A stretch of 63,950 bases of DNA, counting the filler, from Lenisia limosa (lineage: Eukaryota > Protista > Breviatea): the NCBI GenBank assembly GCA_001655205.1. It is 14 parts of 14 records of this genome, joined end to end, with 100 filler letters (N's around TTAATTAATTAA, not from the genome) between each part and the next. Parts side by side here need not be neighbours in the genome. Positions count along the whole stretch, not along the records: positions 41,087 to 47,939 come from LPNZ01010976.1; 13 more parts are not named here. One strand, written 5' to 3'. The notes beneath the pieces were generated by a model that worked only from the letters and a program-made list of their open reading frames with translations, had not been told where the DNA came from and made no database searches. Position numbers and translations under genes: made by a program. Shown here one piece after another: positions 44,728-46,879 of this stretch. Position 1 is the stretch's first letter, and each line of letters starts with the position of its first letter.

Positions 44728-46879
44728 ATGGTATGGAGGGAATTAAATGCTATTTGGACTTATTTGAGGCATTACCAGTTGCCTGCCTGGTACTGGGACT
44801 GGAGGGTAATCAAATAACACAGAAGTGGGGGCTTCTTCTTTTTAGCGGTGAAACTCTTTGAGGAATCGACTGTGACCGTGTTTAATCAACAAAAGACTCC
44901 TTTTACTGTCATTCATTGAACAGGGACCTGCTCTCGTATTTGCCGCTGAAACTGGCCAATTGGATATCGTGAAGGACTTCATTGAGAAGGGTGCAGACAT
45001 CGACCACGCTGATGATTTTGTGGGTAAACTGGGCTGGGTGGATAACATAACTGAATGATACAATTTACTCTCAAGGAGTACTCCTAATACGGATTGTTGC
45101 AGATTGACAAGAGTGATTTTCTCCTTGCATTGACTGACCTTCATAAACAGGGAAGAACTGCCCTCGTCAGTGCCGCTCAGAATTGCCACTTGGATATCGT
45201 GAAGTACCTCATTGAGAAGGGGGCAGGCTTCACCAATGCTGTTAATGTGAGGGAACTGGATGGATCAGTGTTGAAGATATATGTTGCTCTAATAATCAAC
45301 CTCCAAATTGCTGTTTTTTTTTGTTTTCTATGATAGATATGTTATAACTGTGTGGGCTGTCTTATTTGACAATCAGCTAATCCCTTCATTAGCCCTGAAT
45401 TCACCGATATTATTGAAGACTCCTTGCATTGACTGACCTTCATAAACAGGGAATAACTGCTCTGAGCATTTCCATTGAGAATGGCCACTTGGATATCGTG
45501 AAGTACCTCATTGAGAAGGGTGCAGACTTCAACAAAGCTTCCAGATTTGTGGGGTAACTGGATTGATCATCGTTGATAACAATTTGGTCTCAAGGAATAT
45601 TCACCCCCACAATACGAATTACCACAGATTCTTTATTGACTGACCTTCACAGGGAGTATCTCCTCTGAGTTGTGCCACAATTCATGGCCACTTGGATATC
45701 TTGAAGTACCTCATTGAGAAGGGTGCAGACTTCAAAGCTGATAGTTGTGTGGGTTAACTGGATGGATAATTGTTGAGAGCAATTTGCTCAAAGGAATACA
45801 ATTCCCCAAAAATTAATAGTATGTTTTATTTCTGTGGTAGTATGTTAGAACTGTGGGAGCTGTCTCATTTGGCAAGCTGCTGATTCCTTCATTAGCCTGA
45901 ATCTCTATTTTTTTTGAATCGACTGACCTTAGTAAACAGGTAATAACTGCTCTGAGTTTTGCCTCTGGGAATGGCCGCTTGGATATCGTGGATTACCTCA
46001 TTGAGAATGGTGCAGACATCAACAAAGCTGATTATAGTGTGGGTCAACTGGATGGATCATTGTTGAGGATTTGTCTCAAAAGGAATACCAATCCATACAA
46101 CTTGAGTTCAATAGTCTATGTTTTCATCTTCAGGGTTTTTTGTCTCTTGTTTTTGTTTTTGTGTGTGTGATTTTTCTTTAAAACGGCGGTTGTATGTTTT
46201 ATCTGCACATATTCTCATTTGACAAGCAGCTTATTCCTTTACTTGCTGAATTTCCTATTATTGAAGACTCCTTGCTTTGACTCACCTTCATAAACAGGGA
46301 GGAAATGCCCTAATCAATGCCTCTGGGAAAGGCCACTTGGATATCGTGAAATACCTTATTGAGAAGGGTGTAGACTTCAACAAAGCTGATGATTTTGTGG
46401 GTTAACTGAATGGATCATTATTGAAAGCAATTTGCCCAAAGGAATACCAATCACCGAGGCCTGTGTCATTTGACAAGTAGCTAATTCCTTCATTAGCCCT
46501 GAATTCACCATTATTATTGAAGACTCCTCACATTGATTGACTTTCATAAACAGGGAATAACTGCTGTCATCAATGCCGCTGAGAATGGCCACTTGAATAT
46601 TGTGAAGTACCTCATTGAGAAGGGTGCAGACTTCGAAAAAGCTGATGTTAATGTGAGCGACCTGATTGATAATTCTTGAGTACAATAAAGGAAGACCAAT
46701 CCACCAAAATACGAATCGATTCAAATTGTTCTTGTTTTCATTTTTTTTATGATATTTCTCTTTACAACAGTTCGAAGTTCCCCAGAATTATTGATAACTT
46801 GGCTGACTGACCCTCAATATAGGGAAGAACTGCCGATGATGATTATGATGAACTGGTTTGTGAAAACAAACAAACATAA
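44728..46879 (+). CDS. Ankyrin-repeat protein (~270 aa), one ankyrin repeat per exon: 44924-45019, 45151-45246, 45450-45548, 45653-45748, 45940-46038, 46298-46396, 46554-46652; terminal exon 46823-46879
   Basis: Seven 96- or 99-nt phase-0 exons, each reading [33 protein letters not shown]. All have CAG acceptors with a CTGAC-like branch motif and GTG(G/A)G donors. The N-terminal exons and ATG are inferred from phase. Confidence 0.92.

Follow-up and report, generated by a model that had tools for sequence, protein, structure and literature searches.

An ankyrin-repeat gene of Lenisia limosa, probably built by tandem duplication of an exon-plus-intron module

How does a gene come to consist of successive variants of a single exon, and does such an architecture mark a recognition gene that shuffles its repeats, or simply one that has grown by duplication? 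The question is raised by an ankyrin-repeat gene at positions 44728-46879 of a 63,950-nucleotide stretch of DNA (the window) from the breviate Lenisia limosa (GenBank assembly GCA_001655205.1), in which 14 parts of 14 records are joined end to end with 100 filler letters between each part and the next. An earlier note, made from the sequence alone, had described this gene as a series of ankyrin cassettes with a near-fixed scaffold and a variable binding face, and had proposed that it might form a diversifying recognition system. The analysis reported here covers the piece in which the gene lies (41087-47939, LPNZ01010976.1), a single 6.8-kb gapped draft scaffold with about 40% G+C and short GT..AG introns. 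The reading we favour, and consider probable, is that of an ankyrin-repeat-only gene of some 270 codons, with seven full repeats, that grew by module duplication, with exchange between units and divergence of the repeat surface.

The core of the locus is a series of seven exons on the plus strand, to which all features of the gene belong, each encoding one ankyrin repeat. Repeat exons 1 (44924-45019), 2 (45151-45246) and 4 (45653-45748) are 96 nt long, and repeat exons 3 (45450-45548), 5 (45940-46038), 6 (46298-46396) and 7 (46554-46652) are 99 nt long. Taken singly, all seven match the Pfam Ank family (PF00023; E=1.2e-4, 1.2e-6, 2.5e-7, 4e-6, 8.9e-7, 3.1e-5 and 5.5e-6 for exons 1 to 7), with scores of 22.6-31.0 bits against a gathering cut-off of 21.1 bits. 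Every one of them is bordered by AG on its 5' side and by GT on its 3' side, begins and ends in phase 0 and is free of internal stops, and the 14 internal splice dinucleotides (14/14) are intact across the array. The differences in exon length amount to one codon in every case, whereas the introns carry many insertions and deletions (indels). Exon 3 lies nearest to the consensus and exon 5 opens with GTA, encoding Val instead of Gly. Exon 1 (GPALVFAAETGQLDIVKDFIEKGADIDHADDF) is the most diverged among the seven copies and looks like an N-terminal cap. Compared with the PDB, a profile of the exons matches designed ankyrin repeat proteins (DARPins) and natural ankyrins, and every intron interrupts the ankyrin repeat in phase 0, between canonical positions 3 and 4. 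Coordinates, splice borders and Pfam matches hence agree on the arrangement of one repeat per phase-0 exon of 96 or 99 nt that had been put forward for this locus, and the end coordinate given for it, 46879, coincides with the end of the terminal exon (46823-46879).

The beginning of the gene is predicted from the sequence. A putative first coding exon at 44732-44809 would open with an ATG, run for 26 codons and end in phase 0 at the donor AGG/GTAATC, and an alternative first exon might use the ATG at 44738 and a donor at 44795. Pfam searches with the open reading frames (ORFs) over the putative first exon returned no match. The intron that would follow it (44810-44923) has a 3' end (aagactcctt..actgtcattcattgaacag) that shows homology with the corresponding flank of the other introns in an alignment of the exon-plus-intron units (alignment A1).

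The same alignment shows that the introns of the array are homologous to one another. The six internal introns, within the span 45020-46553 (45020-45150, 45247-45449, 45549-45652, 45749-45939, 46039-46297 and 46397-46553), measure 131, 203, 104, 191, 259 and 157 nt in order, and the last intron (46653-46822, 170 nt) is homologous to them as well. Column identity reaches 70-82% at the two ends of the introns (~28 nt at the 5' end and ~42 nt at the 3' end) and 40-60% in their middles, where indels are abundant; within the exons it amounts to 64-71% in the first third and to 83-94% in a 45-nt scaffold segment. The conserved intron 3' segment of ~42 nt contains a motif, CTGAC, that resembles a branch point and lies 15-17 nt upstream of the AG. 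An intron 3' motif (TTGACTGACCTTCATAAACAG) occurs five times within three mismatches and an intron 5' motif (GTGGGTTAACTGGATGG...) four times, with none expected from shuffled sequences for either. A lenient pairwise alignment of the introns was uninformative, given that a shuffled control reached 81% identity, and Tandem Repeats Finder (TRF) called no tandem array at the locus because the units carry too many indels. Since the introns are mutually homologous, the copied unit comprises the exon plus its intron, and both alignment A1 and the motif counts against shuffles bear out this part of the earlier proposal. The in-frame interchangeability of units that it envisaged also holds, as the symmetric phase 0 of all seven exons implies that the loss, gain or swap of a unit preserves the reading frame.

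The 45-nt scaffold had been described as nearly invariant even at synonymous sites. Its low divergence was confirmed, but the quoted sequence is found exactly in exon 3 only, and the other copies depart from it by one to four bases. The scaffold differences total 16 in 315 bases (~95% identity to consensus), 12 of them nonsynonymous and four synonymous, and a degenerate 39-nt pattern derived from the scaffold matches all seven copies with none expected. Synonymous codons are used in a column-specific manner, with ATC for Ile in column 16 and ATT in column 21, GGC for Gly in column 12 and GGT in column 24, and TTG for Leu in column 14 and CTC in column 20. This indicates that scaffold identity stems from common descent or homogenisation, and not from codon bias. 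With 12 of the 16 differences nonsynonymous and a ratio of nonsynonymous to synonymous divergence (dN/dS) of 0.87, the scaffold is near-fixed through little nucleotide change. Over the full repeat, the other copies share 56-70% of their amino acids with exon 3, and the columns average 74% identity.

The variable peptides of helix 1 and the turn had been listed correctly. To place this variation on the protein, exon columns were mapped onto the canonical repeat DxxGxTPLHLAAxxGHLEIVEVLLKxGADVNAx, in a register confirmed by the PDB profile alignments. At the six positions randomised in DARPin libraries, which we take to be 2, 3, 5, 13, 14 and 33, the proportion of nonsynonymous differences (pN) reaches 0.43; it is 0.185 at the remaining positions, and the synonymous proportion (pS) for the whole exon is 0.187. 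Only 62 of 20000 random sets of six codons reached the observed pN (P about 0.003), and a binomial test of the placement of replacements at canonical surface positions gave P=0.013. Change is therefore genuinely concentrated on the binding face. The correspondence with the DARPin-randomised positions is partial: positions 2, 3, 5 and 13 vary as had been suggested, but framework positions 9, 10 and 12 vary too, and of the two other randomised positions, 33 is an invariant Ala and 14 is mostly Asn.

Codon models suggest positive selection at the binding face. A model with a single nonsynonymous-to-synonymous rate ratio (omega) for the whole exon (M0) gave omega=1.43, and M2a was favoured over M1a (likelihood-ratio test (LRT) 10.98, P=0.004) and placed 23% of sites in a class with omega2 about 5. 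A posterior above 0.9 for omega>1 was obtained at columns 2, 7, 10, 32 and 33, which correspond to canonical positions 5, 10, 13, 2 and 3. When two nucleotide-rate classes were allowed, in order to stop the slow scaffold from mimicking selection, the test was nominally significant with a degenerate estimate (LRT 5.1, P about 0.012), and the best null model of this kind had omega=1 in both classes. Minimum changes per site amount to 0.65-0.94 in the intron flanks and 0.48 at synonymous sites, and a hand parsimony count gives ~1.4 changes per nonsynonymous site for the surface codons, so that the surface has changed only about 1.5-2 times faster than the intron flanks. The dN/dS ratio at the surface positions thus does not fall to one or below, the outcome that would have pointed to ordinary neutral duplication, but the signal is a fragile one, drawn from a very small data set in which recombination can be detected and the intron flanks are nearly as fast as the surface codons.

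Evidence of exchange between units comes from a permutation test of the pairwise homoplasy index (PHI) type, which yielded P=0.003 over 26 informative sites of the exon plus its flanks, with 162 of the 325 pairs of informative sites incompatible. The history of the units is hence mosaic, which is what gene conversion or unequal crossing-over between tandem copies would produce. The array also retains what, by its alignment to the units, is a truncated and decayed eighth unit. The terminal exon (46823-46879; 57 nt, GRTADDDYDELVCENKQT plus stop) shares its first 12 nt with the start of exon 2, lacks the scaffold, which has been deleted, and continues its reading into former intron sequence, and the 3' flank at 46880-46950 appears to hold remnants of the intron 5' region of a unit (ttggatcatcatt, tgcccaaatgatccaccga). 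The chance of encountering no stop in the seven exons under random substitution at the observed density is 0.07 and, together with the open frames, the kept splice sites and the one-codon indels, this lends modest support to a functional gene.

These features can be accommodated in a single course of events. The gene would have arisen by tandem duplication of a module, one phase-0 exon of 99 nt together with its intron, and unequal crossing-over between homologous introns is the most likely mechanism. The copies have since swapped short stretches of sequence, whether through gene conversion or through unequal recombination. This exchange would keep them similar in nucleotides over helix 2, the scaffold of the loop and those ends of the introns that adjoin the splice sites, while the beta-turn and inner-helix residues that make up the concave binding face diverged at about or above the neutral rate and the eighth unit decayed into a C-terminal tail. 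The product would most likely be an intracellular scaffold for protein-protein interactions, each of its repeats contributing a different patch of one binding surface.

Relatives of the array were sought outside the source genome, in metagenome, viral and prokaryote genome collections and in protein libraries, and no paralogous array or DNA-level relative was detected in them. The 39-nt degenerate scaffold pattern had no match in the three genome collections, and a word search with the 42-aa genomic ORF made up of exon 3 and its intron-encoded flanks yielded no candidate. A back-translated search with the exon alignment returned 80 loci. Nearly all of them are generic ankyrin genes, long ORFs free of introns in which identity to a single repeat is 44-89%, and none of the 80 is related at the DNA level. 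A large HMMER search with the exon profile produced 166,704 matches, of which the best 150 were all giant multi-repeat proteins with mixed names (mollusc, fungus, aphid); the best scaffold match among these 150 covered 16 of 20 residues, and they included no close kin. An ESM Atlas look-up of one exon led to generic Ank clusters only.

Within the piece, a search of both strands with the scaffold pattern for extra, inactivated or reversed copies of the unit recovered only the seven exons, all on the plus strand. Pfam searches with the ORFs in the 3.6 kb upstream and 1 kb downstream of the gene detected no signalling or effector domain, and specifically no NACHT or NB-ARC domain 5' of the repeats, in a scan that starts with the piece at 41087 and that, operating at the ORF level, could miss short exons. 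Rfam returned no match over the whole piece. In folding, introns 2 and 6 do not surpass shuffled sequences (z +1.90 and +0.59) and the pairings found in them are not common to both, providing no indication in these introns of a docking- or selector-like RNA structure.

The favoured reading of a duplicated, exchanging and surface-diverged ankyrin gene must be weighed against another, in which the locus is a neutrally drifting young tandem array, be it a gene without function or in decay or a very recent expansion ahead of selection, with the scaffold as the part still homogenised by homology-dependent gene conversion and the diverged patches as those that escape it. Several results weigh against the former and, in part, agree with the latter. 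Neither the scaffold dN/dS of 0.87, with three in four of its differences nonsynonymous, nor the whole-exon omega of 1.43 demonstrates purifying selection on the protein, and both are in keeping with drift. The codon models were fitted with our own maximum-likelihood implementation to 7 x 33 codons of paralogous repeats, recombination is known to inflate selection tests of this type, and the splicing model and first exon have been deduced from the DNA. Drift would likewise be compatible with the omega of one in both classes of the best two-rate null, with intron flanks that do not fall far under the surface codons in rate, with a probability of stop-free exons of only 0.07, and with an eighth unit that has already decayed. 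What this explanation leaves unaccounted for is where the replacements lie. Their non-random placement at canonical surface positions is not predicted by homology-dependent conversion alone. The restriction of exon indels to single codons amid many intron indels, the intact splice sites and the dual-rate test, which still favours omega>1, also argue against a drifting array, and we hold this explanation to be rather unlikely.

A more far-reaching alternative takes the locus for a diversifying recognition gene, that is, a member of a receptor-like family in which phase-0 ankyrin cassettes would be skipped, duplicated or exchanged to generate new binders, through alternative splicing or through germline or somatic recombination, much as in the Ectocarpus genes and fungal NOD-like receptor (NLR) arrays discussed below. 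Symmetric phase-0 exons of equal or near-equal length, recombination between units and the indication of omega>1 at canonical binding positions all fit such a gene, and precedents exist in leucine-rich repeat (LRR) and tetratricopeptide repeat (TPR) exons (PMC3341825) and in the ankyrin (ANK) repeats of fungal NLRs, with their hypervariable concave-face sites (PMC4986451). The piece, however, contains no signalling or effector domain and its introns no inactivated or reversed exon copies; no paralogue or relative was retrieved from the collections searched; the repeats are far less alike than those of the fungal arrays; no conserved RNA structure was seen in the introns that could steer the choice of cassettes; and a conserved scaffold with a variable surface is a generic pattern of ankyrin repeats. 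For the diversifying recognition system that the earlier note had in mind, this leaves the fragile selection signal as the sole support. We regard cassette shuffling for recognition as unlikely, and there would seem to be little chance that the gene belongs to an undescribed family of ankyrin exon-cassette recognition genes, under diversifying selection, in a protist or alga. Such a family would obtain new surfaces from interchangeable phase-0 exons by unequal recombination or alternative splicing, and would be the ankyrin equivalent of the exon-shuffling LRR and TPR receptors of Ectocarpus. Lastly, the array might owe its length to the assembly, if a shorter array had been expanded or scrambled in a gapped draft scaffold. 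The piece does contain N gaps, one of them with a near-duplicate segment beside it (41087-41250 and 41380-41560), but no gap falls inside 44700-46900, and the units differ by ~15-20% in their exons and by many indels in their introns and are therefore distinct sequences, not collapsed or duplicated reads. An artefact of this sort is scarcely credible.

Other features were noted in the same piece. The segments at 41087-41250 and 41380-41560 are near-identical over ~170 nt, include an 18-nt tandem repeat (TTGATGATGGTTATGTTC) and flank a 10-N gap; the duplication probably stems from the assembly or from haplotypes. A short dispersed element is represented by two diverged copies at 41257-41340 and 42830-42920 (GAAAATCGGTCAAGAC..CCGGTCACCGTATAT.. 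and GGAGAATCGGACAACA..CCAGTCACTGTACAT..), with no match in Pfam or Rfam. On the minus strand, 47270-47939 contains probable exons of another gene across a 100-N gap, and peptides encoded there, such as AVVDMGTIINCS, VVDQKKSFAKPK and LLGVPAKDVLVF, are reminiscent of motifs of the haloacid dehalogenase (HAD) superfamily of hydrolases. Also on the minus strand, two 115-aa ORFs (44842-45189 and 46377-46724) overlap the ankyrin exons in antisense; in all likelihood the repeated sequence gives rise to them as a by-product, and they are not genes.

A comparable ankyrin array, with a conserved scaffold and variable helix-1 positions, was encountered in an AT-rich metagenome contig of an unrelated eukaryote (Ga0207864_1021030, our L019; 2500 nt, 18% G+C). 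The pattern is therefore not peculiar to the L. limosa genome. In this contig (L019:200-1900) each repeat is made of one 87-nt exon (29 aa) and four micro-exons of 3 nt, set apart by near-identical mini-introns of 36-41 nt (gtaagtatattta...aattttgtag). The micro-exons encode the beta-turn residues x2, x3, G4 and x5 (as in D/D/D/G/K/TPLH and D/W/F/G/E/TLLH), which together with the 29 residues of the long exon complete the canonical 33. It is unusual for precisely the variable residues of the turn to be encoded by exons of a single codon.

Comparison with known systems places the L. limosa gene in relation to several repeat architectures. With DARPin libraries it shares a consensus-like framework and has its highest variability at four of their six randomised positions, the remaining two being, as described above, an invariant Ala (33) and mostly Asn (14). 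It departs from them in the variability of positions 9, 10 and 12, in having TAL-x for TPLH, in the scattered replacements of its framework and in that natural N- and C-terminal caps are not evident. The intronic pairing elements of Dscam-like arrays of mutually exclusive exons were not found in introns 2 and 6.

The ROCO-LRR and NB-ARC-TPR genes of Ectocarpus, candidate immune receptors that shuffle exons, form a clustered family with signalling domains, dead exons in their introns and positive selection at binding sites (PMC3341825). They resemble the gene described here in encoding one repeat per fixed-length phase-0 exon (PMC3341825; PMC11378527), and for this gene, too, the fragile signal described above suggests positive selection at ligand-binding positions. 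Here, though, the repeats are ankyrin and not LRR or TPR, neither ROC-COR nor NB-ARC was seen, and the introns hold no dead or reversed exons. The ANK, TPR and WD arrays of fungal NLRs, which are accompanied by a NOD domain, are defined by repeats that share at least 85% of their amino acids across 100 residues or more (Dyrka et al. 2014, PMC4986451). They have in common with the present gene concerted evolution, recombination and variable sites on the concave face, in its inner helix and beta-hairpin, and the best PDB matches of the exon profile are fungal NLR-type proteins, such as the NACHT-ankyrin 6ne1, along with DARPins. The identity of 56-70% seen here nevertheless lies far under the 85% threshold, the repeats are separated by introns and no NOD was found. 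Diversification through exon cassettes has so far been known from LRR and TPR exons in brown algae and, in intron-less form, from ANK, TPR and WD repeats in fungal NLRs, and it would be extended to intron-separated ankyrin repeats if the L. limosa genome were to carry many such arrays, with exons passing from one to another or with signalling domains fused to them.

The closest parallel is the second class of repeat genes of Street, Rose and Barrick (2006) which, as far as the summary in PMC4585158 conveys, consist only of exons the size of the repeat unit, or of a multiple of it, and arise when intron/exon modules are duplicated. The L. limosa gene has in common with this class its single repeat per exon, its constant exon length, phase 0 and the homologous introns, and in it repeat-sized exons, a single intron position and mutual homology of the introns, the features that define the class, are all present. 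No essential difference was apparent, and the ankyrin locus adds to the scheme evidence that exchange between units continues, and a decayed terminal unit. If so, the gene would be a compact example of repeat-protein growth by duplication of intron/exon modules, in which concerted evolution and surface divergence can be followed side by side, an illustrative case that leaves the field unchanged. The best reading of the locus is hence that of an ordinary member of this known class of module-built repeat genes.

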